Shown: one piece after another, positions 11,458 to 46,835 of the stretch
How positions within the stretch are numbered: the first letter of the stretch is position 1
How the letters are laid out: the number at the start of each line of letters is the position of its first letter
From: Octopus bimaculoides
Taxonomy: Eukaryota
Assembly (NCBI RefSeq): GCF_001194135.2
Contig: NC_068985.1
Span: forward strand, 31,616,968-31,672,910
Length of the DNA: 55,943 nt
Direction of reading: 5' to 3'
Notes under the pieces: generated by a model
Seen by the model: only the letters and a program-made list of their open reading frames with translations
The model's database searches: none
What the model was told of the DNA's origin: nothing
Position numbers and translations under genes: made by a program

Positions 11458-11736
11458 AGGTGAGGACAAATGAAGAAAAGGAAAATATGTCTTTGCATGT
11501 CTGCAAGAGTTACAGCTAGGCAGTGGAGTGGGTAGATGGATGGAATACTTAAAATAAATATAAAGAAGTTATATACATCCAGTACAGATGTATATAAATA
11601 TCAGTTATGTTAGAAACTTCATTAAAGGCTCTCACATAATTTCAAAGACAAGAAGAAAATTACTGTAATTTTGCAACAAAAAAGTAACAATCTTTGCAGG
11701 TTGATCTTACCATCTCTCCCACTTCAGTCAGTAAGC
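11458..11736 (+). promoter_or_regulatory. Promoter plus non-coding exon 1 (about 11621-11730) of peptide gene copy 1
   Basis: TATATAAA at 11591, Inr-like TCATT with its A 30 nt later (11621), ATG-free exon, donor CA|GTAAGC at 11731. Homologous to the 27.8 and 46.7 kb modules. Confidence 0.7.
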
Positions 11737-12039
11737 TAACTTTTATTTAATATTGAATTCAACTTCGGTTGAAACAACAAAAATGTTTTGCTTTTCATAA
11801 AAGCTCATCAAAAGCATTTGCATTTAATTACGTGATTTTAAAAAATATTTGATATATATATGTGGTGATGTTCAAATAGCATAAAATTGAGAAAATATAA
11901 AAATCCAGAAAGTTGAATAAGTAATAGTTCTAGATTGTGATTAATTTCATTTTGAATCTGTCATAATTATGATAACAGGTTTACTAAGAACCTGTTCACT
12001 GAACTGAAGAGTGGCTCTTTATCGTGCACAAAAAAAGAA

Positions 12040-12770
12040 TTGGATGAGAGCCATGGACCACTTCCACATTCCAGACAAAGTGATCAAAATAATATTATGA
12101 CAGTTTTGAAATGAGGCTTACAGCTGAAGATTTTAAAACAGATTGGCACCGACTGGAGATTGGCATTGCTGCTGGTTGTACAATATCTGTTACGCGGTTT
12201 ATCTTAATCATGGAGATGATTTTGAAAGCTGTGGATTTTTTGGAACAAATCACCCATGTACAATTGCCTAAGAAAGCCTTCATGGATAACATGACACTTC
12301 TAGCAACATAAACAAATTATGCAGAATGCCCTCTTGAAATTAGATGAACTTGTGAGGTGGTCAAGGATGTGGTTTAGAGCAAAAAAGTCACATAGTCTGA
12401 CATTTGTTAAGTGAGTGCAGAAAGAATTTAAGTTTCGAAAAGCTGAAGAAAGCATTCCAGCAATCAAAGAAGAACTCATCAAGAGCTTGGGGCAAGTATA
12501 CGCTGAAACATTGTCAGATAGGAGTCGCGGGATGGAAATTATGAAACAAGCCGAAGGTGGATTATCAGTGAGTGATAACTCGAAGTTACCAGATAACTAT
12601 AAAATTTGGTGCTTGTAGATCAGCTTGTACCCGCGACTGTTGTGGCCATTTTTAATATATGAGGTAGCCTTGTCACGAGTTCAGATTATTGAACAAAAAT
12701 GTAATGTTTTCATTAGAAAGTGGCTAGGCCTACCTCAGATGTTGAACAGTTCAGCTCTATATTAGTGGCG
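12040..12770 (+). mobile_element. HERO-like (RLE-type non-LTR) RT fragment inside the intron of copy 1
   Basis: DWHRLEIGIAAGCTISV, AFMDNMT, KSLG, YPRLLWPFLIYEV, IRKWLGLP..L.SSALY match the HERO-clade RT pattern as I recall it; frameshifted. Confidence 0.7.
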
Positions 12771-12950
12771 TCTGAAGGAAAACTTTATCAAATGAAATGT
12801 TAAGGTAATTACAACATATAGAGCATAAAATGATTTTATCATTTCTTGTTAAATAATATTGAATTATGTAATCTAATTTTAAATGATAGTTAATAAGATG
12901 TTTCTTTTTTTTTTTTGCAATCTTTTAGATCTTATCAAAGGAAATACAAT

Positions 12951-13205
12951 ATGAAGCAGTATTTGAGTAACTTGTCAATGATATTTGTCTTCTGTTGTAT
13001 TGGAGTGATACTAACTGCAGAATCTTCAAATGAAGTAGAAAACTCATTGCAAAACAATGTATTTAAGGCCTTACCATCTGGATCCTACAGCCAACTGTCA
13101 CCTTATTTACAAAAGTACAGAAGAGCAAAGAAGCCATTTGGTCGTGATCAAGTGAAAGAATATTACTTCATCTCCGATCCATTCCCTCAAACGAATATTC
13201 CTTGA
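12951..13205 (+). CDS. Small secreted prepropeptide, family copy 1 (84 aa), whole CDS in exon 2
   Basis: MKQYLSNLSMIFVFCCIGVILTA signal-like N-terminus, basic cluster KYRRAKK, C-terminal EYYFISDPFPQTNIP. A polypyrimidine tract and ttttag acceptor (12927-28) lie 22 nt before the ATG. Paralogous to 30684-30959. The upstream in-frame start of the ORF track (12915) is intronic. Confidence 0.85.
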   Translation: MKQYLSNLSMIFVFCCIGVILTAESSNEVENSLQNNVFKALPSGSYSQLSPYLQKYRRAKKPFGRDQVKEYYFISDPFPQTNIP

Positions 13206-13696
13206 AAAATAGACATTTCAGAAACAGCTAACAATGGATAACTCAATATTTTTCTTGATTCTTACAATGACACATATTTTTTAGATTTGACATTTCTATG
13301 TAAAAATAGAATTATAATTGCTCTATAAAAATTTGTCTTATTTTTATTAAGTTGTAAAGCTTGGATTTTATTTATGTTATTTTATATTTATTTCATGCTA
13401 TTTTGTGAGCAATAGGGTCTTTGGTTACATGTTTCCAACAGGCCAATTACTGGTTCATTTCATTTAAGATATCAAAGGTAACAAAGGGGTGTGTGTGCAA
13501 TATGAATGGAAAAAATACTACCGGTTTTCATTTAAAAGAATTAGCATTTAGTTTTCCTTGCCAACATTCACAATATTTGCTGATATACATCAGTATAATG
13601 TGCATGTGGACACGGACACACACACACTACAGGTTTCCATACAGTTTTCATGCATCAATGTTACTGACAAATGTTATGTAAATAATTTTAAATCAA

Positions 13697-13916
13697 CCCT
13701 TTAGCATTCAGATTACTCTGTCAAATGTAATGCTTATTTATTCACATTGTTATGAATTAATCAGGTATTATCTCATAGCTTTGAGATTTTGATGATGTGT
13801 TTGTTGATTTTTTAGAATGACATTGTAAGATAGGTGTGAGAGGCTGGATGAGGCTGGTTAGAACATAAAACAAGTAAAATATTTGGATTAGATATGGTTG
13901 TTTAACTGCTAAGGGG
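13697..13916. mobile_element. piggyBac-like MITE
   Basis: Ends CCCTTTAGCA...TGCTAAGGGG, flanked by degenerate TTAA sites (tcaa/ttca). Confidence 0.55.
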
Positions 13917-14106
13917 TTCATATATATATACTTAATAAAGCATGAGAAAAAGATCACAACAAAAACAATAGAAGAAAAATTAAAACAAAAAGTATAAAAT
14001 TTGATTTGCTGTCCCAAAATTAAATTTGAAGTATACTCTTTCTCTCTTTCTATTACATGTGTGTGTGTGTGTATGCGTACATATATAGATATGTATATAA
14101 TGTATA

Positions 14107-14137
<31 letters not shown>

Positions 14138-14307
14138 NNNNNNNNNNNNNNNNNNNNNNNNNNNNNNNNNNNNNNNNNNNNNNNNNNNNNNNNNNNNNNN
14201 NNNNNNNNNNNATATAATATAGGATAAAATCTTTATAAGAATTTATCAAGTAGTCAGCGTGAAAAAACCCCATAAGGAAAAAAAACTCATTGTTTTTTCC
14301 CCATAAA

Positions 14308-14500
14308 TATATATAATTTATATAAGGGCATTAACTATATAGTAATGTCTCATGCTTAGAGGGACTAAATAAGTAAAAAACTACCAAAAAATAAGCAACA
14401 TATTTACCGTTGCTTATTTTTTGGTAGTTTTTGACTTATTTAGTCCCTCTAAGCGTGAGGCATTACTATATAGTTAATGCCCTTATATAAATTATATATA
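14308..14500. repeat. Near-perfect foldback inverted repeat (about 91-bp arms, 11-nt loop)
   Basis: Arms 14308-14398 and 14410-14500 are complementary with 3 mismatches by eye; lies in TA-rich flanks. Confidence 0.9.
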
Positions 14501-14711
14501 TATATACATATATGTAAACACTAAATTAAATAGAGAGATCCAATTGACAATCCAATAATTTATTTATATTTCCTTAGTTTGTTACTTTATGCACATATAT
14601 AGATATGTATGTGTGTGTGTATGTATATGCATATATATGTGTGTGTGTATGTATATGCATATATATGTGTGTGTGTGTGTGTGCATGTATATACACACAC
14701 ACACACACATA

Positions 14712-15447
14712 CAGAGGTTGGACAAAATAATGGAAACACCTTAAAATTTCAAACAAATTTATTTTAATATGGGGTAGGACCACCTTTGGCAGTAATTACA
14801 GCTTGAATTCTATGAGGTATGGACTCATACAAAGGTTGAATTGTTTCCAAGGAATATTTGTCCATTTTTCAGCTAAAGCAGTCTCTAGTTCTTGTAGTGA
14901 TGATGGTGGAGGATATCGACTCCTTACATGTTTTTCTAAAATGCACCGTAAATGTTCAATAATATTGAGATCTGGGGACTGTGGTGGCCAGATAAGATGT
15001 TCAACTTCACTAGAATGTTCCTTGTGCCATTCAATAACAAATTTAGCTGTGTGAATTGGTGCATTATCATCCTGAAATATTGCATTTTCCTCCGGAAACA
15101 GTTCCGCAACCATAGGATGAATTTGATCAGATAGAATGCTTAAATAGTCTTGACTATTAATTCTGCCATGATGGGAAACCATTCCCCACCCCTCAGATCA
15201 TCACAGATCCTCCTCCATGTTTAACAGTTGGAAGAAGGCAGTCTGAGTCAAATGCTTCTTTTGGCTGTCTCCACACGTACACTCAGCCGGTGGTCATAAA
15301 TAAGGTAAAGGATGACTCGTCTGAGAAAATAACATTCTTCACTGCTCTAATAATAAATAAAAAAAACAAGCTTTTGATGGTTTTATAGATATTTCAAGAT
15401 TATGATGCTATGATGCTAGGTGTTTCCATTATTTGGTCTAACCCCTG
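14712..15447 (-). mobile_element. Internally deleted Tc1-family transposon with both TIRs
   Basis: FQDDNAPIH and WPPQSPDLNIIE catalytic motifs (14796-15182). 29-bp TIRs at 14712-14740 and 15419-15447 (26/29 match); TA on the left flank. Confidence 0.9.
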
Positions 15448-15506: not shown

Positions 15507-16086
15507 NNNNNNNNNNNNNNNNNNNNNNNNNNNNNNNNNNNNNAATTAAAACAGTCACGATGTCTGGTGCAGGCTTCTACCTGGCCGGCGCTTGTGAAAC
15601 CGTCCCACCCATGCTAGCATGGAAGGCGGATGTTAAATGATGATGATGATGTATGTGTGTGTCTATATATGCATATCTGTGTGTGTGTGTGCGTGTGTGC
15701 ATGCATGCATGCTTGTATGTGTGTGTGTGATGATGATGATGTGTATGTGTGTCTATATATGCTTATGTGTGTGTGTATGTCTGTGTGCACATGCGCATGT
15801 TTGTGTGTCAGTGTGTGTGTCTTTACAGTCAATGAAATTAAGTTAACATCTGATGTATCTTATCTCTACTTTAGCTGTAAAGCTAATACCTTATTTTAAA
15901 CTGCATGCTGTGGACTATACATCCTTAGTCACAGGTTTTCAATACACACGTCAATGTAGCTAAGTTAAAGAAATATAATATATATTTCTTTTTGGTCCAA
16001 AAGCACTGGCTTATTGGTTTCCTTGCTTATGTTTGCTGATATACATTGACAAAGGTGTGTGTGTGTGAGAGAGAGAGGGGGAGAGA

Positions 16087-20700: not shown

Positions 20701-22749
20701 TTAAATTTCTAAATGAAAATTGTGTATTGAAAGTAAAAACCTTATATTTCAATTAAATTTGGAAAATTGAAATACCTACTTAAAAAATTGAAAATAACTT
20801 GTTTAAATGTGCTTAATGACATTACTTTACATCATTACTTTATTATTGCTGCATTATTAAAATTAATATGTAATTAAAACATTTTAAACCTTTCCAGTCT
20901 TTCATTACTTACTTCCTGCAAATATAATTTAGTGGAACATAAATTTGTTGACACCATTAATAAAGTAGACAGTATTTGTTTATAGTATGAAATCACACTT
21001 CCCTTTGTGTGAATTTTCAGATAAAAACAAACAAACAACAAAAAACAGTGTTCCATTCCTACCTCTGTCACTTATATTTTCTGATTACTTTCGTAGCAAC
21101 AATTCACGAGCAAAATTTTACTGCTTCTAGCTGGACATTAATTGATATGATCTCTGATGTAGGCAGCTGTGCATGGTAACCATTACTTATAAGCATGATG
21201 CAACAGGTATCAATATTTGGCCAACAACATAAAATCTACATCCCTAATGCAAACTAGCAAATGTAATGAAGAGTTAATATCATCACAATTACAGAAAAAT
21301 GTAACAACATTATAGTAATTTAAACGCTTCACAAGGCATCTGGACAATAGATAAAACTCACTTCCAGTTATGCCTTCTCAAATATACCCAAATATATGGC
21401 TGAATCAAAAATGTTAATATTTAAGTCTTTTGTATAAAGTGCACAGGTAATTTTCAGGTTTAAAAGGGCTTTCTCACCAATGTTTAAATCAAGTTAGACC
21501 ATGAATCAGTAGAAAAAAAATTTTGCTCTTCTACTGATTATGAAATAAGAGATAACTCTTACAGTAATTGGGTTAAAAGGGGAGAAGAGCAATGGGCAAG
21601 AGAAAAATATAATCAACAACTTGATAGATTACAGAATTGTGGGAGGAGGAATACATTGTTGATAGACAGAACATCACTGTACCATCAAAAATCTTTACAC
21701 AAATTAATTAAATGAAGACTGAATATATACTTAGACAAATGAAATGGAAGGCATGTGCCATCAACAAATATTTTATCTTTTATCTTTCACTTGTTTCAGT
21801 CATTAGATTGCAGCTATGTTAGGGCACAGCTTTGCAAATGTTTACAGCACCTAGGTTTCTCATGTGGTCACCTATCTAAGTACTAGCTAAGCTTGATATT
21901 ACTAAACTTCAGTGATCAGATGAGAACTGGTATTTTCAACGTGACATAAATAAGTTCAGTTTCAAAACCAACAAAAGAACCATGGTAATATCTGAATTAG
22001 ATTCAATATCATAAAAAGAAATGGATGAATAGAACATCACAACTAGAGAAATCTGTACTTCAATGCTATTAAAACCCATGACAGCATTGCTACATTTCTA
22101 TTCAATTAATTTCATAAATAACCTAATACTTATGTTTATGGAGTTAAGTATATTTTTGCTATGTCTAATTCTTTTCATTTTATTATTAAGGGTTCTCTAT
22201 AAGGTTATCTTTGTGGCCTTTCAGCATTATGTATGTTTTATATTGATTAAGGTGTTCTACACAGTCTTGTATGTCTAATTGTCTGAAATTCAATAATCAT
22301 ATCAAATTTCCAAAATGAGTTAAGAGGGCATTTATTACTCTTCCAGAATTCTAATAATCTATTTATGCAGGCTGATAAGACTAAAAATTTGTATGAACTT
22401 GATGCAAATGCATATAGCACACATGAATACATACAAACTCCACTGCAGGTCCAATACCCAGAGTACAATAAATGATAAGGCAAAAACATTAGCTACACAA
22501 TTAAAAATAGAAGACTGCGATAGAACATCTTAATCAATATAAACCAAGCATAATGCTGAAGGACAACAAAGACAATTTTAAAGAGAATCCCCAGTAATCT
22601 AATGAAAAATGAATTAGACATATACTTGACTCCATGAATTCAAGAATTAGGCGATATATGAAATTATTTACATAGAAATGTAGTAGTGCCATCATCAATA
22701 AGTTTTAATACTATTGAATAGAAAGTTAACCATAGATTTGTCCAGTTTG

Positions 22750-23490: not shown

Positions 23491-24999
23491 GATCCACAGA
23501 GTTAGATCCTGCTTTAGTAAGGAAAATGGCTTTTAAAAGCTTGTTGTTCTTTTATTATATGCTTGACATTTCATAATCAATGGTATTCAACAATGTGATA
23601 TCAGCTCACTTGATTTCATGAAGCGAAAGAAACAATGAAAAATGTGAGATGTGACAGTCATCCTTTTCTAAAATCATTAGTTATATAACGTGAAGTAGAA
23701 AGAACTATAACTTGAAATAAAAATCCAGCTACAAACACACTTTCTATTTAGCTTTATATGATTATCACAGTGTGTTAATGGTACTTACTTTATCTCATAA
23801 ATTTGAAGGAATATCTTGAGTCAATTCGAACAAGGAAGTTCTAAATTTAACATAATATCTTCCAACAAGATTACAGGAAGAGAGCTACAGCTTTTTTATG
23901 CCTTGTGAGACACACTTGGAAAGTTTCCAGCATGGGATCATCATGCTGAGTAAAGACCCATGACAAGACAAGACAAGCATTGTTCAAAACCTTAGTGATG
24001 ACTGATGGAGAGCAAAAGTGCCTCAAATTCTGATGGACTTAAAAAGATACTGCTGATGGAACATGCGACATGTCATTGTACCAATGCAAACGCAAATAGT
24101 AGCTAGCAGATGAGGATTTCTCGTTAGTTTCATTCTGAAACATTGTATAACATTTAAATAACATTTGATCAACTATTTTATTGGTATTATAAAAGAATTC
24201 TTTTTAAACAATTCAAGTTATAAAACCAACAAAACACTGCAATGTACACAAAAATTTCCACTTTGCTGATTTTATAGCTTATATGCCACATTGTCCAGCC
24301 ATAGAAACCATGCCAAAACAGACAACTGGAACCTGGGCAGCTCTTCAGTTAGTCAGCTCCTGCTAAACTGTCCAACCCATGCCAGCATGGAAAACAGAGT
24401 TTAAATGATAATGATGATGATGACAATAATTTTTATGATACAAATATATTAAATAAACACACATACAAATTCATACAGTATACACAGCACACACATACAC
24501 ATATATATGTACAAATACATACTGATGTCATCATAAAATCAAATTAAAAAAACTTGGAAAAATCTAACTTAATAACTCAATCATTTCTAAAAACACAACA
24601 CATTAATTCACTGTTTACATCAGAAAATGACTTGTATCCACATGCAACTTGGCTCTTCTTTGATTGAATTTTTTGTGAAGTTGATTTCCTTTACATATGC
24701 AGTGTTTACATTCCATACTCAAGATAGAAAATATTAACAAGAAGACAAAAACATTTTAATTTCTTTTTTCCTTTGCTCTGCTTCTCCCCATGTTTTCCTG
24801 TATCTTTTTACAAATTATTTATTTTTTTTATTGGACTGGAAACATTGTTTCTCTTATACACAGCCACATGTGACTTTGCTCACCAAATATGTCTGTGCCA
24901 ACCTTACCACATTTTCTGTCAGAGTTGGTTCACTGCCCTTTGTTAACTGTCTTCTGTTAATATCCATGTACCCATTTGTATATGTGTGTGTCTTTGTAT

Positions 25000-27300
25000 G
25001 CACAGTCACAAATCTGTGCTGCTGGTAACATATGATCCAGTATAACCTGTATTCCTGGCTGGGTGGTCAGTGACTAAACATGCTCCCCTGTCAGGAATGC
25101 CTAGTGAGGAGGATTCACTAGAAATCAAGCAGGAGAAATACATGACCTGTCATAAGGTAGAAGAATTCAGGAAAATGTCAACAACTATCAAATAACAAAC
25201 TATGGTGACATGAGATGGTAAATGAGTGAGGTTTAAGGACCACTTGGAAGTGATGGATCCCTAGTTCTACCCAGAACATTCAGCTAAGAGATAGAAAATT
25301 CCAAATTTTAAACCCTCACGATTTTGTTGGTTGCCATAGTTGGCAAAGATTAGGAGAAGGAAACTCTAATATAAAACCTCCAGTTGATAGTGCCACCAAT
25401 CATCTTGATCATTTCTTGTCACTGGAACATGGTAGCTGATACTTAGAGAGTGGTACTTGTATTGTACAAGTGTCTATAATCTCTATAAGGTGCTGGTGTT
25501 TCCAAACACCACAGTATATTATGTCTTTCAAAACTAGCATTATCCAGTATCAAAGTATTTTATGAGGAAAAGAAAGTAACCAGTTTTATTGAAACTGGTC
25601 TGTTAAAGTTTTTAGGTGATAAGTGTGTGGTGATGTATGCAGGCTTAATGAGTTATAAGCATGGTCAAAAACCTGCCCATTAGGTATGAACAGGATTTCT
25701 CTTAACATTTTTCTCCAATCTTGGCAATCAGAAGAATTATGTAGAATCCCTTATAACTGAGAAACCTTATTTAAGAAGGGCACTTCTCACTCAATTACTA
25801 GTGTAAAGACTAAAAAAGGTGCCCCAAACACTGCTGTTATACAAGCTGGTCAGCTCACCATGACTGTGAGTAACAGCTATTAGTTTAACAGGAGCAACAA
25901 ATGTAAAATGCAAGAACAAATAAGCAAAGTACACATCAACAGATGTGATACTAGAATGTGTGAGCCCTGCTAGAAGATGAATAATCCAGCAGATCTGAGC
26001 ACCACACTGTTTTTGTTGTAGCAGAGCATCACTAATATTGCTGCCTTTTTTGAGATATGATTGTCAGGAGAATGTTGTTAGTTAACTGAAATGGATTGTG
26101 ACTACAGTTTCTTTTCTGCAAGCCAACAGATGAGGAACAAGAGGATGCCATTTGTGATGTGGTCAGGAAGAACTCAGCTGATAGGCTAGATCAACTCTGC
26201 TTGCTAGTGTCTTGTAGGTACCTTTATTCTCTGTGTTTGCACCAACTCTTCATTCACAAGGAAAAATTCTCCTTCTTTTCTAGAAAATTATAGCAATGCC
26301 ATTTTTCCCACAGTGATTGGCAAAAAGATAATCCTACATGGTGACTTTAATGCCAGGGTAGGTTGTGACTGCAACACATGGTCTAATTTGGGACAACTCA
26401 GCATAGGGAAAATGGATAGTACCAATTTACATTTACTATAACTATGTTATAAGCTAGGTCTTGTGTAGATAAAAACACTCTTCAACTTAAAACTCAGGTA
26501 TAAAGTTATCTGGAGAAACACTCAGCTGAATCAAGGCCATTTTATTGACTGCCATATGTAACCACAACACTTGTGTTCTCTGTAGCATTAAAATTTTGCA
26601 TGGGGCTAGCATCATAGAACTGGTAAAGCTGAATCTGTTTGTTAGGAAAACATTTATAATGAATAACATGAAGGTCCAAATGGCTGAATGTTGGGAAATT
26701 CTAAGTCCCACCTGTAGCTTTTCATGGAATTCGGGGCACACAGACACAAATATTGATTCTATGAAAACAATTCACAAATATCTGAGCTTCTAGGCATCAG
26801 GCAAAAATTATGCCAGAAATTGTTCAATTTAAATTTGTCTTGAAAGGAACATTTTCAGCCAGAAGAATTACTGAAACACCAAAAATAACTTTACAGAGAG
26901 AACTGAGGGTACTGAAAATGCATGGTGGCTGAATATATCTGTGAATATTTAAGTGAACTTTGATAAAAGAGTACAATTTGTTGAAACAAATATTTGCTTC
27001 TTGTCATTCAACTATCAGTCTTCTCCATTCCAAAGATGGATCTACTTTTATCAGTAATATTGAAGGTTTTATGGGCAGAGCATTTCACAAATATTTTTCA
27101 TAATCCATCTCATAGAAAACTTACTGCAGCATCATGTTATTTAAAAACAGTTTAATAATCTTAATATAGAGGAAGTCAACTAAGGAAAAATTTCAAGAGC
27201 TTAGAGATACCTGACATCTAACTTCATTTATCTCCAAGAAAATACTTTCTATGCCCATATTGTATAAATAATATGTAACTTTAAGGAAACTTCCACCACA
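25000..27300 (+). mobile_element. Old RTE/BovB-like LINE remnant (5' region and AP endonuclease)
   Basis: ILHGDFNARVGCD...W..LG...GK APE motif at about 26330-26430; surrounding sequence heavily decayed, boundaries approximate. Confidence 0.55.
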
Positions 27301-27623
27301 TATAAAATAAAGGTGACCACTACCAAAATTCACGTGCTTAACATGACTTTCAACAAGACATGATATATTTCTAAGTATTTAGATATTCGAAACCTATAAT
27401 TTGTTTTTATGATTTTGTTGCTTGATTAAAAAACTTTATTGTTTTCATGACACGAATAAAATATTTAAATGCTTTTGCTATCATAAAATGTTATTGAAGG
27501 TATGAGAAAAAAAAATAAAGTCTTTTTTAGTCAATTTAAGCTATAAAATCAACTAAATACATTGTAGGTTTCTATTCAATAAAGAGTGTAACCTGTGTAA
27601 ATAAATAGACAAGTAATGACAAG

Positions 27624-27932
27624 AGGTGGGGATAAATGAAGATTAAATCAAAATATCTTGCTGTACTAGCATGGTAAAATGGACATAAAAATACACTAAA
27701 ATGAACTGCAGGGGGTGGATTAAATAGTAGCACTATTCTATAAGGAAGGAGTATGCTTGTACAGATGTATATAAAAATCAACTATGTTGGGACCTTCATT
27801 AAAAGCTACCACACAATCTAGTAGGAAAGAGAAAGATCACTGCAATATTAGAAAAGGTATAGAAACAGAAAAATAACAAATCTCTGTAGTTTGATCTAAG
27901 CATCTTTCCATCTGCAGCCAAAATCAGTAAGT
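27624..27932 (+). promoter_or_regulatory. Promoter plus non-coding exon 1 (about 27798-27926) of peptide gene copy 2
   Basis: TATATAAA at 27768, TCATT A at 27798 (30 nt), ATG-free exon, donor CA|GTAAGT at 27927. Confidence 0.7.
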
Positions 27933-30683: not shown

Positions 30684-30959
30684 ATGAAGCAGTATTTGAG
30701 CAACCAGCTAATAATTGTTGTCTTCTGTTTTATTGGAGTGACATTGTCGGCAGAATTTTCAGAAGTTGTAGGAAATCCTGCTGTTGAATCTCAAAACTAT
30801 GCATTTATGAGTCAATCAAATGGATATCAACGCAGAATACCATCTCATCCCTTACGAATTCAAAGGCAAGTTTTCAAACAAGAGAATGAGCAAAAGTTCG
30901 TGGATCCATGTAATGAAAATTTTGAAGTATCAGATCCATTCCCTAATAAGAAACATTGA
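30684..30959 (+). CDS. Small secreted prepropeptide, family copy 2 (91 aa), whole CDS in exon 2
   Basis: MKQYLSNQLIIVVFCFIGVTLSA signal-like N-terminus (17 of the first 24 aa identical to copy 1), RIQR (R-x-x-R) site, C-terminal ENFEVSDPFPNKKH. Acceptor ttccag at 30664-65; AATAAA at 31053-58. Confidence 0.87.
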   Translation: MKQYLSNQLIIVVFCFIGVTLSAEFSEVVGNPAVESQNYAFMSQSNGYQRRIPSHPLRIQRQVFKQENEQKFVDPCNENFEVSDPFPNKKH

Positions 30960-31149
30960 TTAAAAATGCAAATTCTTAAAGAATTGCCAATATCTCTGTG
31001 TTTCTCCTATTTCCTCAAATGATACACGCTTGAATCTAATATTTTTGCATAAAATAAAGTTACCATAGCTCTATAAAAGTTTGTCTTATTCCTACAGTGG
31101 CTGTAAAGCTAAGGTATTATTGATTCATGTTATATTGCATATGAATGTG

Positions 31150-31565
31150 CTGACATAGCTGCAGGGTTAAAAAGTTTGCTTCCTGACCATGTGGTTTTAG
31201 GTTCAGTCCCACTGTGAGGTATCTTGTGCAAATGTCTTCTACTATAGCCCCTGACAAATCAAAGCCTTGTGAGTGGATCTAGTGAATGGAAACTAAAAGC
31301 TGATTGTGTGTGTGTGTGTGTGTGTGTATATACATACATACATATATGCCCTTGTCTTGACATCATGTGATGGGTGTACATCAGCATGTTGTTCATTTTC
31401 AGTCTTCTGTGAAATATATGTTTGGCTATGGGAATATTACTTTGCATGGAAACAGTTGGGGGTTGGCAACAAGAAGGCCATCAAGCCATAGAAAATCTGT
31501 TTCAACAAATTCCGTCTGACCCATGAAACATGGAAAAGTGGACATTAAATGATAATGATGATGCT
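31150..31565 (+). mobile_element. tRNA-derived SINE with RTE-type 3' tail (also 39965-40440 +)
   Basis: Head ..gtttgcttcc..ccatgtggtttt.ggttcagtcccactg, internal (GT)n, tail catggaaaagtggacattaaatgataatgatg. Confidence 0.75.
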
Positions 31566-34304: not shown

Positions 34305-34570
34305 TGGTCAAGCAGTTAGGGTGTCATGCTCATGATTGTGAGATCATGGTTTTGATTCCTGGATCAGGCAGTGTACTGTGTATTCTTGAGCAAAACACTT
34401 CATTTCACCTTGTTCTGCAATTATTTCAATATCTGATGTCTGACACACCATGCCTCATAGAGGCAATGTCAATTTAATGGAGGGAGTGAGCTCATGTACA
34501 GTACAAACATTTGATCATGATAGACAAATCATCTGAGCAGGTTGTTCAACAAGAAATTGCAGAGTCATCT
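34305..34570 (+). mobile_element. tRNA-derived SINE
   Basis: ggtcaagcagttagggtg...ggttttgattcctgg head followed by cttgagcaaaacacttcatttcac. Confidence 0.55.
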
Positions 34571-35391
34571 TTCACAGATTTGAGAAGCTACTAGTTGACT
34601 AGTCTAAAAAGTGGTGATGTAGATATATCTGTTGATCTTAGCCTGTTAGATGGTTGTCAGTAGAAGTAAACTACCAATTTGTGGATTTACATTTGAAGCA
34701 CTATCAATATAACAACATATGGTATCCACTACAAAGTGTTGCTGACTCAAGAAGCTAACATGGCAATTTATAGTTACTAGTATTACAAAAATAACAACAA
34801 AAACATCTGTTTGTGTGAATAATTGCATTATCTATTAACCACATTTGTGTTTTAGTTATTGTATAGGTTTTATTACCAGAACATTCAATCACTAAAATCT
34901 ACAACCATCTTCAGAAGTCAACTTTGTTACATACTAATAGAAATAAAGTGAAAGACAAGAAACGAAAAAAAGCAAATGAGAAATGAAGAATAAAAAAAAT
35001 TTCAAGTGATAAATTGATATATGTGGAAGTCAACAATAGTGGTAGTGTCTTTGAAACTGTAAACCAAAATGATTAGATAGCCAAGATATATTTTTATAAA
35101 GAGACTTAAGTTCTCTTCATTTTCTTTAATCTTCTGAAGTATTATAAACTAGCAGTGGTTTCTGAAGAAAATTTTTCCAAATGAAAGTAATAAAACATAA
35201 GAACACATGAAAATAATTTTCTTATTTCATGCTAAACATTTCAGAATTATACAATATAATATTTATTTAATGAGGGTTAATAAAATCTGTGTGTGTGTGT
35301 GTGCATGCATGCATGTGCATGTGTGAGTGGGTGGGCATATGTATGCATATGCATGTGGGTGCACATGCACATCTATTTGTGATATTTTTAG

Positions 35392-35696
35392 TTATTACCA
35401 AAATACAATATGAAGTAGTATTTGAATAACCAGCTAATTGTTGTCTTCAGTTGTAATAGAGGTGATACTATCCCCAAAATCTTCAGATTAAGTTATAAGA
35501 CATTCTACAACTACATTAAAACAAATTTGCATATAAGCATGAGCATAGCTGTGTGGTAAGAGGCTTGTTTCACAATCACATGGTTCTGGGTTCAGTCTCA
35601 CTGCATGGCACCTTGGGCAAGTGTCTTTTACTACAGCCTGGGGCCAACCAAAGCCTTGCGAGTGGGTTTGGTAGACAAAAATTGAATGAAAAACCC

Positions 35697-35730
<34 letters not shown>

Positions 35731-36140
35731 TGTGTTTGACCCCCCCATGATTGCTTGACAACCAATGTTGGTGTGCTTACGTTCCTGTAACTTAGCAGTT
35801 CGGTAAAATAGACTGATAGAATAAGTACTAGGCTTACAAAGAATCAGTCCTGGGGTTGATTTCTTCAACTAAACAACCTTGGCTGCAATCAAATGACTGA
35901 AACAAGTAAAAGAATAAAAAAGAATATCAATGTTAAATCCTGTCCTATCATTTGTGAACTCAAGGAATCTAAACGAAAAATGAAGCTAAATCTAGTTGAG
36001 AACTAAGCTTCATGAATCTATGGCAGAGTGGAATCTTAACTGATCTTGTAAAAAAAAATTACTAATGATGCATCCTTTTCATATTTCACATTTCTACAAA
36101 ATAATATATTTACAATTGCTCAATAAAATTTTCTCTGCGT
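35392..36140 (+). pseudogene. Pseudogenised coding exon of the peptide family (copy 3), split by a SINE
   Basis: Acceptor ttttag|ttattaccaaaatacaat, then ATG at 35410: ATG AAG TAG TAT TTG AAT AAC CAG CTA (stop at codon 3), a frameshift, and VILSPKSSD* matching VILTAESSNE. After the SINE, homology resumes (gaa tat caa ... ttg tga act caa vs gga tat caa ... tta cga att caa). A homologous 3'UTR follows at about 36085-36140. Confidence 0.8.
35536..35925 (+). mobile_element. tRNA-derived SINE inserted in pseudogene copy 3 (related copies 47815-48240 -, 28690-28790 +, 10720-10920 -)
   Basis: gctgtgtggtaagaggcttg...ggttcagtctcactgcatggcaccttgggcaagtgtc head, (GT)n, tail caaatgactgaaacaagtaaaaga. 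Confidence 0.85.
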
Positions 36141-36239
36141 CTTACTATTGCCATAAAACTAGGATCTTATTTATATTTCATACTGTGAACAATACGATCT
36201 TAGGTTACAGGTTTATCACTGCATGTAATATAACAAGAG

Positions 36240-37740
36240 TAACAAGGAAGTATTTGTGCACTTGGGTGACTGTAAACCCTTGCAATTTCTGCACCGCATG
36301 AAGGAATTGGCCCAAAATGCACCTGCTGATAGTGATTTATTGAAACAACTTTTATTTTCCTGGTTGTCCTCTAATGTCCAAGCCTCTATGGTGGAGATGA
36401 CTCCCATCGAGCCAATAGCCTCCGCCGCCGACAGAATCACAGAGTATACACCACCAAGCCGACCCCAGTACCACTGCATACCTCTGCACACCCACCAGCA
36501 GTGTCAGTTTCCCCTGATAAGGACCTTGTTTTGGCTGCTATCCTAAAGGCAATAGCTGAATTAATGAGAGGAGGGCAACTCCTTCACACTTCCAGGCCAC
36601 GCTCACCCAGACTGCGTTCTTTTGATTGCTCCTTCTCTCCTCACCGTCACTTATCCACTGCTCATTCATCTATATGCTGGTACCATGCCAAATTTGGAGC
36701 TTCAGCACAAAAATGTACCCAACCCTATACTTTTTCTCACCAGGAAAATGACCAGCCAGAGAACTGAGCGCAACACATTCTCTGCAGCAGCCAGCGGGCA
36801 ACTGTGCATTTTTCATAACAGACTGGCTATCCCATGCCCGCTGCCTTGTAGATACAGATACTGCCTGCAGTATCTGACCATTAAAACTCTTCATGGATAA
36901 ACTGCTGTTATCCCCAGTGACTCTACAGGCAGTGAACCATTCACCGATTCCAACTTTCGGCCAGATATCTCGTTCGTTGGATTTAGATCTGCGACATGAC
37001 TTCAAGTGGATTTTCACAGTTGCAGATCTCTCTTACCCAATATCAGGTGCAGATGTTTTGCACCACTTCCATTAGCTTGTGGACATGTGCAATCAGCACT
37101 TATGGGATGCGACCATAGAACTTTCTGTCCCAGGTAAAAGGCCACTAACCACTGCAGTTAGTCCAGTCTCTTTCATTGCTGCCACAGATGACTCATACCA
37201 TGCACTCTTAAACTCATATCCAGAGCCGACTAATCTAAATATTTTTACTGCTGCTCCAACTCATACCACCACCCATTTCATCAAAACTAAAGGTGCTCCA
37301 GTTTTTCTCTCACTCTTGCTGCCTCTCCTCAGAGAAGCTACAGGTGACCAAGACGGAATTTAACCACATGCTCCAGTTGGGCATCATCCACCCCTCTAAT
37401 AGCCCCTGGGTGTCACCCTTGTATATAGTTCTAAAGCGTTCTGGGAACTGGCGGCCCACTGGTGGCTACAGGAGATTAAACTCCTTCATGGTGTCAGACA
37501 GGTCCCCAATACCTTACATTCAGGATTTTGTGTCATGTCTCCACAACTGCAGAGTATTCACCAAACTGGACTCGGTTAAGGCATACCATCAGATTCCTGT
37601 AAATCCAGAGGATATTCCAAAGACTGTCGTAACCACTACATTTGGCACCTTCGAATTCCTAACTATGCCATTTGGTTTACAGAATTCAGCCAGCACATTT
37701 CAGAGGCTCATAGACGAAGTTGTCTGAGACTTAGACTGTC
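36240..37740 (+). mobile_element. Ty3/gypsy LTR retrotransposon internal fragment (gag, protease, N-terminal RT)
   Basis: Gag LGDCKPLQFLHRM and CWYHAKFGASAQKC; protease-like WIFTVADLSYPISGADVL; RT SPWVSP...YRRLN...FTKLD...AYHQIP...MPFGLQNSASTFQR. Frameshifted, truncated before YxDD, no LTRs seen. Confidence 0.9.
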
Positions 37741-38180
37741 TTCATACTCTTGATTGCTTTATCTACCAAGGTACTGTCAATTAGGATAGCTGGTCCCTCT
37801 GTTGGGTCTACATTTGGTAGACTCTCTTTCTCCCATTCATTCTCTTTATTGAGCAACCTTTCATAGTGGCATCTTACATGTAAAAATATTGTTGTTTTAT
37901 GATGAATAGTTCAGTAATTATTATAGGTAATTATTATTTTGGATGCTTAATTACAAAATATGGATTACAGTAAATTGTTAATAGAAGGCAAAAATGAATG
38001 GGAAAAGTGCAAGTAGAAACCCAATAATTACAATGGTGAATATATAAGGACAACAGAAAAAAGATTCAGATGGTATTCAAGTTATTCAACTTGCTGACAG
38101 CAAATGATATCTGATTGTGATGACTGAAATATAATATTTAATAACAGTCAATAAAACAATGTTTTTTGTAATATTTTCAG

Positions 38181-38600
38181 TTCTAATCAAAATATGAAGC
38201 CTTATTTCAGCAGGTAGTTAATAATTTTTACATTCTGTTGTATTGGAATAACACTGGCTCGAGGAACTTGGAAAGGGAACCATGAAAATATTGACAAGAA
38301 TTTAGCATTATTGATTGCCAGCGCTAAAGTAGCATCATGAGATAATGCATTTGTGGTACCATCAAGTAGATATCAATGTCAAATGAACATCTTATTCTTT
38401 AAAAATCAAAACTAAATTTTTCATTGGACTCCAGGTATAACCTTTGATGAGGTATATGGGAGAAATTAGAACTATTAAGTAACTGCCAACATTGGATAAC
38501 TCTGTATTTCTATTGATTCTTACAGTGACACATAATTGTTGCATTTCCCATTTCTACATAAAAATAAATTTACAACAGATCTATAAAACTGTGTCTGACT
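38181..38600 (+). pseudogene. Pseudogenised coding exon of the peptide family (copy 4)
   Basis: Acceptor tttcag at 38179-80, ATG at 38194: MKPYFSR*LIIFTFCCIGITLA...AS*DNAFVVPSSRYQ...QN* with in-frame stops. The 3'UTR closely matches copy 1 (ggataactc...ttgattcttaca.tgacacata). AATAAA at 38563-68. Confidence 0.82.
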
Positions 38601-39229
38601 AATATGATGGTTGTAAAACCAGGAGCTTGCTTATTTATCACATTTTGTGCTGAATAACATCCAAAAGACAATCGCTAGTTCATTACATTTATGATAGTGA
38701 GAGTGACAAGGGAGCATCTGTGCAACTTTGGTAGTATAAATACTAAGGATATTTTCAGTCAAAAGCACCACTTTATTGGTTTTCTTGTTGATACTTAAGA
38801 ATAAGATCACAACAATGGCAGTATCAGTAGACTAAATACAGAAAGTAACAATTTAGATTTCTGTCTAAAATAAAAATCCCTGTATGTATATACATGTGTG
38901 GGGGTAGAGTGTATGTGTGTGTGTGCTTAATGGATAGTATAGTGCAGTGAAAAGGAGAGATTCATTGTTATACAGTACAGTGAATAGAAAAAAGAATTAG
39001 GATAGAGATGAGCGATAGATGAATGAGAGAAAGAGAGATGATTGACAGCAAAATGACTGACAGTGAAGTGAAAGACCAAGATGAGTGACAGTAAAAGGGA
39101 TGCTAGAAGGATGAGTGAGAAAGAAATGAGAGGGAGAGAGATGAGTGGTTGAGATGAATGATAGATAGGTAAGTGGATCAGGCAGCAGATACAGACTCAA
39201 TGGGGATATATTGGGTGAGAGACCCGAAA

Positions 39230-39600: not shown

Positions 39601-40125
39601 TCTAATCTGTTCTTCTGGCTACTATCTTTCAAAGCACCCACCTCCACTACTAACTAGGTTGCAGAAACTTTAATAATTCTCTGATTTGAAGGAATTGGCA
39701 AAATATTTTGAGAGAATTCATTTCACATGTGCTCCTAGTGTTTGCTACACTTGAGAATTTACCACAAATAAAATCTACCTTCCCCATTAGTCTGCCTCTG
39801 ATTCCACAACACCTTTTGTGTGTCCATTAGTTTACACTGAGCACACTTGTTGGAATTTCTACCTTCTCCTTTTCTGCAAATTCAGCATTTCATAGATTAT
39901 ATTTTTATGATAAAAATATAATCTTTTTAGTTTTATTTTTTTCACATGTTTCTGAGTGAATAGGAGCAGGCATGGCTGTGTGGTTAAGAAGCTTGCTTCT
40001 CAACTGCATGGTTTCAAATTCAGTCCCACTGAGTGGCATCTTATTAAGCATTTTTTCTTCTATAGGCCTGGAGCAACAACCGATGCCTTACAAGTGAAGT
40101 TGGTAGACAGAATATGAGAGAAGCT

Positions 40126-40201
<76 letters not shown>

Positions 40202-42973: not shown

Positions 42974-43311
42974 GTATGTATGTATATATATATATATATA
43001 ATAATATTAGGGACAAAATCTAAAATTACAGGTAAAAACTCAATTCAAATCAATTTATAAAAAATTAAAATTAAATTGAGCTTTATAGATTATAATATAT
43101 AAAAATATATAGTTTTAGGGAAAAGAACCAAGTTTCAAGAACTCATCAATGAAAATCCACTATCACATATAGAAAAATTAATAATTAAAAGCACAATAAA
43201 TGAGTATAATATAAAACAAAGTAAATATCATAAGATAAAGATAGTATATATGTGAAGTATATTTGCCACTTAAATGCGGCTAAACCCTACGGGTGAATGA
43301 TGAGTTTAGAT

Positions 43312-43633
43312 CAGGCCTGACCAACTCGACTTACATTGTGGGCCACTTTAATCACAGGAAGTTTTTTGAGGGCCGCTTGTACACTTTATGCACTAATAGT
43401 CAAATAATCAAATTACAGAATTGAGAATTTTTCATACTTTTTGTTTGTTTAAAATGATAAAATTGTAGGCTATTGCTTTATCGCCACTTATAAATTTAAA
43501 ATTTATTTTGAAACAAATGTTTTACACAATCAATTGAAATTAAACACAATACTTCAAGAAAGTATGAAGCGGACCACACGATAAAAGTCTGTAGGCTGCA
43601 TGCAGCCTGCAGGCCTCAGATTAACGAGCCTTG
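43312..43633. mobile_element. hAT-like MITE
   Basis: Perfect 8-bp TSD GTTTAGAT (43304-11, 43634-41), degenerate CAGG.. ends. Confidence 0.7.
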
Positions 43634-44809
43634 GTTTAGATAATAAACAAACTAAGAAACATCTCATAGTATTCTGAAGCTACGACCCTAAAGTTGATGC
43701 AGATACAACATAGCTACTTCACAGAGAGAGAACAAAAGGAATGGTACAAATTGACAGCCAGTACAAAGTAACAACAACTGAGGTAGAAAAATATCAAGAC
43801 GCAAGCAAATGGAAACAAATTAATGTGAAGGAAACAAAAAGTTAATTCTCTATAGATAAGGAAACAAACAAACCAGAAACTAACTACACTGGGGAGGAAA
43901 TAGATTTAGATAAGGACAAAACAACAGAAAGAGAGAGTAGGAAGAAAAACCTCTTCATGGCCAATACCCTGCACTGACTGACTCAACAAAGATGATATAG
44001 ATAAGAGTAAAAGCTGACAACAGCTATAAGGGTCTGAACTAAAAGTAAAAATGACAAGTTTGGTGTACAGGGTCAATGCTTAGTCAGAAATAACTATGAA
44101 AAATGAAAAAGTGGCTAACATAAGTCAGTGGGACATCTGATAACACCATTTTTGTGAAAATCAGTATATTCCTTGATATAGTTGTGTCAACAGCTATGTC
44201 CAGTGGACAAAAACAAAACCAAGTACAGTACATAACAACAATTTGGCTACAATTATCTAGAACATATAGGCTCAAATTAACATGGGGATTAGGGTGAACT
44301 GCCCAAGGATAATTATCAAGGATTACAATGAAAATATCTACATTCAGAAAAACATGATCAAAAGGTTGTTTGGAGGCACAATCAAAGTTCAAGGAACTTG
44401 AAGTGGAAATAATGTAGGGTAAGAAAGTAAAACAGTACCAATAATAACTGGAACAGTAAGTAGTGATAAAGAAGAGCATCAACATAAGCAGGTGCAGCCA
44501 ACAACCCACACACTACACAAAACATTTTCAATTCAGTAAGGTAACTTGTGCAGTACCATCTCTGCACAATTCAAACAACAAAAACTTGAAACAATTATCA
44601 CTTCATAAAATAACACAACACATACTCTGCAGAATCACTACTCAATAATATATCACAACTTAGTTGGTGTTGCAGATTAAAAAGTTACATGCATCACAGA
44701 ACTCCAGTAGCCTGGTTCCCTCTTCATTTCAGGAACCAATACCGTGGCCCCCGTGTACACTAATCAAGATACTGGATTGCTGTCCAACATGACCATTAAA
44801 ATCTCCAGC

Positions 44810-45594
44810 CACAAAAATGAGAGAAATGTTGGACATAAGAAGCATCGGATGTGGCGTGCAACAGAGACGTCTGCGCTGGTATGGTCATGTGCTACAGATG
44901 GATGAGCAGAGCTGTGTGAAGGAGTGCCAATCCCGAACAGTGGAAGGAACACGTGGTAGAGGGAGACCCAGGAAGACATGGGATGAGGTGGTGAAGCATG
45001 ACCGTCAAACGTTGGGCCTCACAGAGACAATGACGAAAGACTGAGACCTCTGGAGATATGCTGTGACTGCGGGGACCCGGCAAATAAAGTGAGATCACAG
45101 CTGTAGCCCACACCAGTGTCGCATAACCAGCCCACTCAAAAAGTACCTTTGGATCATAGGGTGACATGCATTGCTTGAGGAGACCAATTGAGTCAAGTAC
45201 ATCATCAACATTAAAATCAAATCAAACCACAATCAAATGGAAATTGTAGCTGTGGCTGATGCCAGCACTGCCTGTCTGGCTCCCTGTGCTGATGGCATGT
45301 AAAAAGCACCATCCGAATGTGGCTGATACCGGCGCTGCCTAGAATGACTCCCATGCTGGTGGCATGTAAAAGCACCATCCAAATGTGGTTGATGCCAGCC
45401 CCCTCTGGCTCCTGTGCCGGTGGCATGTAAAAAGCACCCACTACACTCTAGGAGTGATTGGCGTTAGGAAGGGCATCCAGCTGTAGAAACACTGCCAGAT
45501 CAGATTGTAGCCTGGTGCAGCCTCCTGGCTTCCCGTCCAACTCATGCCAGCATGGAAAACTGATGTTAAATGATGATGATGATGATGATGATGA
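44810..45594 (+). mobile_element. RTE LINE 3' end
   Basis: RRLRWYGHVLQMDEQSCVK...GRGRPRKTWDEVVKHD, three 60-66 bp UTR repeats (45250-45440), (GAT)n tail. Confidence 0.88.
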
Positions 45595-46575
45595 ACTTAC
45601 ACTACCCATACTCTAAACTAGGTATGAGGAAGCATTTTAGTAGAAGGGGAACATGAATGAGTGCTTCTATGCTCAGAAAATTAATTAATTGGAAGCATCT
45701 TATATTAAATTACTGTTTTAGTCTTAAGGAAGAGTATTTTTCTTTCATTTTAAAAATGTTGTTAGAGTGTCTTTTCAAATTTGCAAGTTTCTAATAAGGA
45801 GACTGTATATTTACATACTTATAAACCAGTATCATATAGATTATTGCATATATCAAATCATTAGATATTATTAAACATAAAAGTATGCTAATTTTTATTA
45901 CTATTGCTTCTTAAATCATTTTTTTAAAACAGGAGCATATGTTTATATAAATATGTGGCTATATAAAAATTCATTAGATATTAGTGGATATGTACATGTG
46001 TTTCTATGTGTATATAAGCAATGTAGGTATATAAATTTAGTTAAGTGTGCATCAACAATTATTTTAGTACATATATTAGGTTAAGCATGTAAAATTAAAT
46101 ATTTAAGTTCATGGTGCTTGGATATAAGTGCCTAATATAAACATTGTGTGTTACCACAAATAAAAACAATACAATCCTGAATTTTTATCTTAATGACTCT
46201 AGGCAACTTTTGCAAGTATTACAAGTTGTGAGTCAAGAAAAAAACAAGATGTAAAAATCATATGATCTATATATCTATAGAGTAGAAGAAATATGAGGAA
46301 GGAATGGATTGTAAGAAGTGGGAAGTGTTTGGGAAGTGAGAGAAAGATGGAGGAAGATTAAAAATCACAGATAAATGTGCAGGAGGAGAAAAAGAAGAGC
46401 AATTGATGCTTCATCCAAAGAAAGAGGAGGGACAGAAGGTATAGAGGAGGGAATTATATGATTGGCACTGTTTCAATCACTGTGATAAGGCTAGCTTGGA
46501 AATTGTTGCTGTTAATGTTGCTGGATATTGTTCAAAAGAAATTAACTTATTTGTCATTGCGCAAGTAGTCACAAG

Positions 46576-46835
46576 AGGTGGGGACAAATGAAGAGAAAAT
46601 TAAATATATCACCACATGTCTGCAAGACTTATAGAGGAGGCGGATGTAATTGAGGTAATACATACTGAAGGCGTATGCTGATGCAGATGTATATAAATAT
46701 CAGCTACGTTGAAACTTTCATTAAAGGCTCCCACATAATATAGGAGAAAAAAGGAAAGTTGCTGCAATATTGCAACAGAAAAGTAACAATTATTGCAGTT
46801 TGATCTTAGAATCTCTCCACCATCAATCAGTAAGT
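46576..46835 (+). promoter_or_regulatory. Third promoter plus non-coding exon 1 (about 46720-46829), no coding exon found in the window
   Basis: TATATAAA at 46690, TCATT A at 46720 (30 nt), donor CA|GTAAGT at 46830. Most similar to the copy 1 module. Confidence 0.68.

Follow-up and report, generated by a model that had tools for sequence, protein, structure and literature searches.

NKY is an ancient neuropeptide of lophotrochozoans whose function and physiological receptor are unsettled. NKY and its two subgroups, NKY-1 (consensus FW[RQ]P[LM]G[YG]) and NKY-2 (consensus G[YF]WIWMPAQG), are known from all classes of molluscs (De Oliveira et al. 2019, PMC6425005), and the synthetic C. gigas peptide is GGIWIWMPAQGYVSVPRDEVGGASNKGSSSNLLRY-NH2 (bioRxiv 10.1101/712687). 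NKY has a C-terminal RY/RF-amide motif in common with NPY/NPF and sNPF, and it is treated as a paralogue of NPY; the "NKY receptor" of Platynereis groups with the sNPF receptors. Cone snails have NKY-derived "doppelganger" toxins, which acquired the 5' untranslated region (UTR) of a conotoxin superfamily and are expressed in the venom gland (PMC13542836). Here we analyze a stretch of 55,943 nucleotides (nt) from Octopus bimaculoides (positions 31,616,968 to 31,672,910 of NC_068985.1; hereafter, "the window"), which is most probably a part of the octopus NKY-2 gene cluster that includes hormone-less offshoots of NKY-2. Octopus NKY-2 genes are not labelled as such in the databases, where they are described as "hypothetical" or "uncharacterized."

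Two of the genes in the window, g1 and g2, have intact open reading frames (ORFs) on the + strand. The ORF of g1 (type A) extends from the ATG at 12951 to the stop at 13205 and encodes 84 amino acids; that of g2 (type B1) lies at 30684-30959 and encodes 91. The two proteins are 37% identical (E = 2e-12). We scanned the entire window with nhmmer profiles for both types of exon and found exactly four copies of the coding exon, or exon 2 (12860-13213, 30592-30970, 35321-35559, and 38113-38466), and exactly three copies of a module with a promoter and exon 1 (11382-11799, 27541-27990, and 46501-46917). Each of the seven matches is on the + strand and has an E of 1e-49 or less; neither the profiles nor a self-comparison identified another copy in the window. 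A first-pass annotation had proposed a tandem family of two-exon genes, with predicted signal peptides followed by basic cleavage sites, and had listed the two ORFs, two decayed copies of exon 2, and three modules with TATA, initiator, and exon 1. We found all of these at the same positions, and its splice junctions were exact: exon 1 ends at 11730 (g1) or 27926 (g2) with the donor TCA/GTAAG, and exon 2 begins at 12929 or 30666, after a polypyrimidine tract and AG.

Each of the three modules has TATATAAA (the TATA element, at 11591, 27768, and 46690), and the A of TTCATTAAA (the initiator) is exactly 29 nt 3' of the TATA in 3/3 modules. If transcription starts where this spacing suggests, then the g1 promoter module is at 11382-11619 (nhmmer E = 4e-113) and is followed by a predicted non-coding exon 1 at 11620-11730, from TTCATTAAA to the donor TCA/GTAAGC. 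For g2, the promoter module would be at 27541-27796 and exon 1 at 27797-27926 (donor TCA/GTAAGT). Exon 1 lacks an ATG, and the earliest one, which has an A at position -3, comes in exon 2. Exon 2 is at 12929-13330 in g1 (the 3' end is approximate) and at 30666-31075 in g2.

The g2 protein has a predicted signal peptide (residues 1-23), a pro-region (24-61) that ends with RIQR, and a hypervariable C-terminus of 30 amino acids. The layout of g1 is similar, with a predicted signal peptide, a pro-region that ends with KYRR, and a C-terminal peptide of 26 amino acids. The predicted signal peptides have a Lys at position 2, a 15-residue hydrophobic core (mean Kyte-Doolittle of 2.4-2.7), and S/T-A before E. 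In this segment, omega (the ratio of non-synonymous to synonymous substitution rates) is 0.12-0.35.

An orthologue of g1, P0005 (82 amino acids), is encoded by Logan contigs L003-5. (These contigs and L001 were considered as transcripts and rejected, because they contain intron sequence and hence are genomic.) Every copy but g1 keeps an AATAAA about 100 nt past the stop codon (at 31053 in g2); in g1, this conserved signal has mutated to AATAGA (13305), while the g1 orthologue on L003 retains AATAAA. The intron of g1 also has about 0.8 kb of extra sequence (11980-12758) with two ORFs of 66-67 amino acids that have no match in Pfam. The match between this intron and L003 ends at 12759, and the extra stretch is probably a lineage-specific insertion.

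The first-pass annotation assigned these genes to no known family and viewed the family as novel. Pfam has no family match for g1 or g2, but it has no match for NKY-2 either, as it lacks an NKY model. A word-indexed protein search with g1 returned zero candidates; this type of search can miss short relatives, since P0005 exists and yet the g1 query returned nothing. Searching with g2 identified A0A0L8HDN1 (an "uncharacterized" protein of O. bimaculoides), a "hypothetical" protein from O. vulgaris and O. sinensis, and a partial ORF (P0001) from a Logan genomic contig, so relatives in all three species had already been deposited. Among 1.84 billion representative proteins, a profile search found only four clusters at E <= 1e-3, and these include P0005 and a protein from Argonauta hians (P0006). 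In this search the family is restricted to octopods, and the claim that it is lineage-specific holds in that sense.

With P0006 as the query, we found proteins from O. vulgaris and O. bimaculoides that are 85% identical to it, as well as a 57%-identical relative. The members of this group, which we call type C, are GAB1602875 from Argonauta hians, CAI9722525-7 from O. vulgaris, and A0A0L8HY72/HY98 from O. bimaculoides. Type C proteins end with ...KREPNWIWMPSHGYVP(V/I)P...GSTILRYG, or, if we write the peptide region with its cleavage site, ...KR-EPNWIWMPSHGYVPVP...GSTILRY-G. Because this matches the NKY-2 consensus, and because the octopus peptide is 50% identical to C. gigas NKY (E = 4e-10), type C is the cephalopod NKY-2 precursor.

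Types A and B are homologous to this precursor. When we aligned a profile of types A and B to type C with hhalign, columns 1-62 of A/B matched columns 1-74 of NKY-2, with a probability of 99.2% and E = 1.7e-19; this match spans the signal peptide and the pro-region, up to the basic site. In a tblastn search of the window, the Argonauta NKY-2 matched g2 (6e-13), g1 (6e-8), and the dead copy at 38 kb, psi38k (1e-21). The relationship extends beyond the proteins. A profile of the window's exon 1 and promoter finds counterparts 5' of exon 2 of NKY-2, both in O. vulgaris (E = 9e-96 and 1e-102) and in Argonauta (E = 3e-34), and all of the exon-1 modules, including those of NKY-2 from O. vulgaris and Argonauta, keep the TATA/initiator core and the GTAAGT donor. 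(The promoter core of the g1 module, for instance, is kept in all of the paralogues and in Argonauta.) The copies of exon 2 from types A/B and NKY-2 also have in common the 3'UTR motif TTAAGTAACTGC(T/C)AACAT and, with the exception of g1, an AATAAA about 100-125 nt after the stop. Descent from NKY-2, with the promoter, exon 1, acceptor, and 3'UTR in common and a position inside the NKY-2 cluster, refutes the idea that this is a lineage-specific family of secreted peptides that is unrelated to any described family, and we consider that idea very improbable, despite the lack of Pfam matches and the empty search with g1.

What types A and B lack is the hormone. In a DNA alignment of the copies of exon 2, A and B are missing about 45 nt of the pro-region (encoding GNHENxDKNLLSLITRA) and about 54 nt that encode the C-terminal half of NKY with its RYG (...GSTILRYG). 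RIQR in g2 and KYRR in g1 align with RTQR-x-LKR of NKY-2, which is the basic site directly before the peptide. Neither g1, g2, nor their orthologues have a motif of the WIWMP type (NKY-2) or the FW[RQ]P type (NKY-1). The C-terminal Tyr-Gly (RY-amide) is absent as well: g1 ends with ...QTNIP and g2 ends with ...NKKH. Judging from these alignments, g1 and g2 are tandem offshoots of the NKY-2 precursor gene, within the octopus NKY-2 cluster.

The orthologous locus of O. vulgaris (OX597818.1:24305291-24380885, or L009) begins at the equivalent of position 21890 of the window. It is collinear with 21890-52128, which is free of assembly gaps (the next gap begins at 52129), at 94.0% identity excluding gaps and with a standard deviation of 2.4% per 250 nt. 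The order of the elements is the same. L009 has an exon 1 at 5.6-6.1 kb (5623-6060 is 95.2% identical to the promoter module of g2); a B1 exon 2 at 9.9-10.3 kb with an intact 87-amino-acid ORF (83.5% identical to g2); a pseudogene at 25.5 kb (25451-25691); a second pseudogene at 28.6-29.0 kb (28621-28974); another exon 1 at 39.8-40.2 kb; an intact NKY-2 exon 2 at 65.2-65.6 kb (65182-65595); and, from 67.3 kb and on the opposite strand, Selenoprotein S (67332-75595). In Argonauta hians, the Selenoprotein S model spans the NKY-2 locus, and the proximity of Selenoprotein S and NKY-2 is a conserved microsynteny across Octopoda.

The two pseudogenes correspond to the dead copies in the window. The first of these, psi35k (34867-36182, + strand), resembles types A/B: it has the 3' end of the intron and the start of exon 2, with an ATG at 35410 and a TAG at codon 3 (35416). 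Its exon is cut after about 130 nt by an insert that resembles a short interspersed nuclear element (SINE; 35531-35918), and a remnant of the 3'UTR has an AATAAA at 36122. The second, psi38k (38113-38660, + strand), resembles NKY-2 and is 53% identical to the Argonauta NKY-2 over 72 amino acids. It has an ATG at 38194, stop codons at 38215 and 38338, and an AATAAA at 38563; it keeps the 45-nt segment of the pro-region and the 3'UTR, and it has lost the part that encodes NKY. Since both copies are present in L009, and psi38k has the same two stops there, they predate the split between O. bimaculoides and O. vulgaris. With two intact genes and two dead copies, the window fits the birth-and-death evolution that the first-pass annotation had suggested.

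The third exon-1 module had been taken for another novel peptide gene, and this proved to be incorrect. Its counterpart in L009 precedes an intact NKY-2 exon 2, so the module at 46.7 kb is the start of a genuine NKY-2 gene, which we call NKY-2 beta. Its promoter (TATATAAA at 46690) and exon 1 (about 46719-46829) occupy 46501-46829 (+ strand) and are 95.9% identical to 39821-40236 of L009. We found no exon 2 for this gene in the rest of the window (46.9-55.9 kb). In O. vulgaris, exon 2 lies about 25 kb past the third exon 1, and given an intron of this length, the coding exon of NKY-2 beta is outside of the window, and there is no need to suppose that the gaps of 262 N or 545 N conceal it. L010, a 1,013-nt Logan contig from SRR16213285, fuses the last 42 nt of exon 1 (46788-46829 in the window, 95% identity) to exon 2 (L009 from 65240 onwards, 95% identity), and it uses the predicted donor and acceptor. 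As the joined segments are 25 kb apart in the genome, L010 is a spliced complementary DNA (cDNA). A gene model from O. vulgaris ends exon 1 of NKY-2 beta at exactly the same junction. The first 369 nt of L010, which are 5' of those 42 nt, do not match the window, L009, or L007; possible explanations are a distal 5' exon that is used alternatively, a difference between species, or a chimera that arose in assembly. Because of this unmatched sequence, the start site of NKY-2 beta is still an inferred one.

O. vulgaris has a second intact NKY-2 gene, alpha (L007), which is 29 kb upstream of L009. We rejected L007 as the orthologue of the exon 1 at 46.7 kb, since its collinear similarity is about 75% and it is the paralogous alpha gene, and the match to L009 is at 94% identity.

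Another paralogue, B2 (A0A0L8HDN1, CAI9722653, and XP_036359008; P0002-4), is at 31.24-31.27 Mb of the same O. vulgaris sequence, OX597818.1. The B2 ORF is intact in three Octopus species (O. bimaculoides, O. vulgaris, and O. sinensis), and its architecture is the same in each of them. The O. vulgaris locus at 31.26 Mb (L002, encoding P0003) is similar to 23978-31485 of the window: similarity is about 75% over about 7.5 kb, of which 3.8 kb lie upstream of exon 1. We considered L002 as the orthologue of g2 and rejected it, because collinear similarity of about 75% indicates the paralogue B2 and the true orthologue, in L009, is at 94%. It follows that omega values computed against L002 are comparisons of paralogues. 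B2 looks like an old segmental duplication, judging from this alignment, and it is 7 Mb from the cluster and in the opposite orientation. (A 7-Mb inversion, which might have explained why types B and C are at separate places in O. vulgaris, became unneeded once L009 was found.) The models CAI9722653 and XP_036359008 have doubtful N-terminal extensions, which differ between annotation pipelines and would bury the signal peptide.

Are the hormone-less genes functional? As a point of reference, NKY-2 itself is under strong constraint: omega is 0.10-0.27 in its signal, pro, and NKY parts, and the coding sequences from Octopus and Argonauta are 87% identical without gaps, versus 73-81%, with gaps, for the flanks. 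The NKY-2 pro-region (DKNLLSLITR...RDNALMxPPSGYQGRxPSYY, residues 34-70 of the precursor alignment) shows as much conservation as NKY itself and hardly varies between Octopus and the 57%-identical relative (P0009, from an ENA assembly). Given this conservation, the pro-region may be another bioactive peptide or may act in sorting. Type B retains a part of it, namely AVESQNYAFM..NGYQRR.

For g2, the two ends of the gene evolve at different rates. Between g2 and its O. vulgaris orthologue, the end of the intron, the 5'UTR, and the sequence encoding the signal peptide and pro-region are 97.6% identical, which is significantly above the background of 94% (P = 1.6e-4). The C-terminal part is just 81.7% identical (15/82 sites differ), which is about three times the background rate (P = 1e-4). 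Omega is 0.12 for the signal peptide and 0.76 for the entire ORF. The pro-region has two non-synonymous changes and one synonymous change, and the 30 C-terminal codons have 12 and 2, along with a 12-nt indel that preserves the frame. The same gradient recurs if g2 is compared to the outgroup L001. It also recurs in B2, for which 21/23 residues of the signal peptide, 30/38 residues of the pro-region, and 16/30 residues of the C-terminus are identical between O. bimaculoides and O. vulgaris. Such a gradient is consistent with a conserved cassette for secretion and processing that is attached to a diversifying product, while a neutral relic would be expected to be at the background level throughout.

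Alternatively, g1 and g2 might be non-functional: hormone-less duplicates of NKY-2 that are drifting towards pseudogenes and whose ORFs are open by chance. Several observations point this way and weigh against our interpretation. First, omega for the entire ORF is near 1 (0.76-1.5 for B1 and 1.1 for type A), and the coding sequences of g1 and g2 are no more conserved than their flanks. In simulations, the frame would remain free of stops by chance with P = 0.11-0.23 per species pair. Second, the contrast in non-synonymous and synonymous changes between the C-terminus of g2 and its signal peptide plus pro-region is not significant (P = 0.13, Fisher exact test), with small counts. Third, 2/4 copies of exon 2 are already dead, and both dead copies exceed the background conservation, so local conservation by itself does not prove a coding function. 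Fourth, g1 has lost the conserved AATAAA and has the extra 0.8 kb in its short intron. Finally, for neither g1 nor g2 did we find a transcript, a read across the splice junction, or a peptide, and the gene-position collection has no record of their exact products; the positions of the start sites are inferred, and the only cDNA, L010, has the 369 unmatched nt described above.

On the other hand, three species have an open ORF of the g2 type, and the sole indel between g2 and its O. vulgaris orthologue is in frame. A relic should match the background in both parts of g2, but the signal peptide and pro-region are above it and the C-terminus changes three times faster. The paralogue B2, too, has kept its architecture in all three of its species. 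On balance, we consider it unlikely that both genes are relics. The chance that g2 is functional, with a diversifying secreted product, seems to us somewhat better than even. On the evidence of its sequence, g1 is evolving near-neutrally, and we lean against its being functional.

The dead copies are themselves unusually conserved. Both psi35k and psi38k, along with the intron-like DNA just upstream of each (34500-35506 and 38000-38660), are 96.5-97.6% identical between the two species, instead of 94.0% (P = 2e-4 to 5e-4); psi38k is at 97%. Across 30 kb, 6 of the 10 most conserved bins of 250 nt are at copies of exon 2. Rfam and tRNA scans of the conserved pseudo-exons found nothing.

One way to account for the conserved pseudo-exons is that the cluster is a single complex transcription unit, and that the copies of exon 2 are alternative or read-through exons of NKY-2 beta. 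A protein from O. vulgaris, CAI9722527.1 (P0011; 209 amino acids), has this kind of structure. Its N-terminal stretch is identical to g2 at 58/61 positions: it contains the first 63 residues of the g2 orthologue, which are joined, via a donor inside the coding exon of B1, to exon 1 of NKY-2 beta (L009 40062-40148) and then to exon 2. This chimera of two genes stems either from read-through transcription or from an artefact of annotation. The unexplained 5' sequence of L010 might also belong to such a unit. But the chimeric model requires a donor within a coding exon and may be the product of choosing the longest ORF, and both of the intact genes carry a conserved TATA/initiator module of their own, with an AATAAA of its own in g2 as well (g1 has AATAGA). 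We consider a single complex unit quite unlikely.

If we return to g1 and g2 as offshoots of NKY-2, the history of the cluster is most probably as follows. The ancestral gene had a TATA/initiator promoter, a non-coding exon 1 of about 110-130 nt, a long intron, and a single coding exon, which encoded a signal peptide, the conserved pro-region, a basic site, the 34-residue NKY peptide (WIWMP...RY), and the Gly that donates the amide. Tandem duplication gave rise to g1, g2, psi35k, psi38k, and the NKY-2 gene whose exon 1 is at 46.7 kb. The promoter, exon 1, acceptor, signal peptide, core of the pro-region, basic site, and 3'UTR were retained in g1 and g2, and the rest of the NKY part has changed so far that it can no longer be recognized.

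The precursors would enter the secretory pathway, with the signal peptide cut after S/T-A. They would most likely be cleaved by furin-type or prohormone-convertase-type enzymes at R-x-x-R (RIQR in g2 and KYRR in g1), and type B would also be cleaved at QRR. Cleavage would leave a conserved pro-peptide from the N-terminal side and, from the C-terminus, a peptide of 26-30 residues without an amide; in type B, the octapeptide IPSHPLRI(Q) would be released as well. The C-terminal peptide of type B has one conserved Cys, so it could form a disulphide dimer. Since g1 and g2 retain an NKY-2-type promoter, NKY-like (neuronal) expression would be the default expectation. More speculatively, types A, B1, and B2 might be neofunctionalised, with the NKY-2 promoter, signal peptide, and pro-region kept for secretion and the hormone swapped for a short, diversifying peptide, and the dead copies might persist as exons or regulatory elements; this is a tentative proposal, which we consider less likely than not. 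If it were true, these genes would encode a new effector (defensive, reproductive, chemosensory, or related to venom) or a new neuropeptide that derives from the pro-region.

The surroundings of these genes are rich in transposable elements: a fragment of a Tc1/mariner-type transposase (DDE_3) is at 14796-15182 (- strand), and fragments of reverse transcriptase (RVT_1) are at 8915-9562 (- strand) and 37293-37727 (+ strand). A SINE-like repeat of about 400 nt with a (CA)n tail has at least four copies in the window, including the one that truncates psi35k. Besides the insert in psi35k (35531-35918), stretches with transposon content are at 47817-48240 (- strand), 39960-40200, and 31154-31347. 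Given this neighborhood, the family could itself be a transposable element or a dispersed repeat. However, just four protein clusters were found at E <= 1e-3 among the 1.84 billion representatives; the O. vulgaris copies were found at two places on one chromosome (the cluster and one dispersed paralogue); their positions are orthologous between species; and the copies contain no transposon domains. These are not mobile elements, and the contrary can practically be dismissed.

Two assembly gaps, at 14138-14211 and 15507-15543, are intergenic and each follows a (TA)n run. Because they are situated between the 3'UTR of g1 and the promoter of g2, they do not break any exon, intron, or frame of the family, and they are relevant solely to the adjacency of g1 and g2. 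At two gaps of 10 N (9431-9440 and 55433-55442), the same sequence is found on either side (65 nt and 36 nt are repeated), so these are unmerged overlaps between contigs, and the assembly has small artificial duplications there. One of these gaps is inside the reverse-transcriptase ORF at 8915-9562 (- strand). Two sites on the - strand (21839-21951 and 54057-54127) resemble structural RNAs: one is a full-length 5S rRNA-like match (E = 6e-10, 59.4 bits), and the other is a borderline match of the tRNA type (29.8 bits), in which ARAGORN identified no tRNA. These are probably SINEs or pseudogenes that derive from 5S rRNA or tRNA.

A search of the literature by accession and by peptide string returned nothing about types A and B. 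In the searchable literature, we found no report of a cluster with two intact NKY-2 genes, of the hormone-less NKY-2 paralogues A, B1, and B2, or of two old pseudo-exons that are conserved above background. In the text of a cephalopod venom preprint, NKY occurs only as a query peptide. In O. vulgaris, the cluster has two or more intact copies of NKY-2, together with paralogues that lack the hormone and keep the cassette for secretion and processing. If genes like g2 are expressed, they would be an example of a neuropeptide gene becoming something else, and in cone snails the NKY gene independently gave rise to a toxin. Our analysis also leads to corrections of existing annotations: CAI9722527.1 is a chimera, and the N-terminal extensions of CAI9722653 and XP_036359008 are doubtful.

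How do g1 and g2 compare to known systems? Like NKY-2 precursors, they have a predicted signal peptide, the pro-region core QN/DN-x-A/F-M...P/S-x-G-Y-Q...R-x-x-R, and a basic site; their promoter, exon 1, acceptor, 3'UTR, and poly(A) signal are homologous to those of NKY-2; and they lie within the NKY-2 cluster. Unlike NKY-2 precursors, they lack the WIWMPxxG core, the RY-Gly amidation signal, and a 15-residue segment of the pro-region, and their C-terminal peptide is shorter, non-amidated, and fast-evolving. As they have no RY/RF-amide end, nothing suggests that they act on receptors of the NPY/sNPF type.

The precursors of conotoxins and of amphibian skin peptides combine a conserved prepro region with a hypervariable mature peptide. 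The pattern in g2 is similar (97% identity for the signal peptide and pro-region and 82% for the C-terminal peptide, against a background of 94%), but there is no cysteine framework (type B has one Cys and type A has none), and the likeness is in pattern and not in ancestry. The NKY-derived toxins of cone snails are, like g1 and g2, duplicates of an NKY gene in which the peptide-encoding region has diverged. The octopus copies differ from them in that they retain an NKY-2-type promoter and exon 1, and in that the NKY motif has been lost instead of mimicked.

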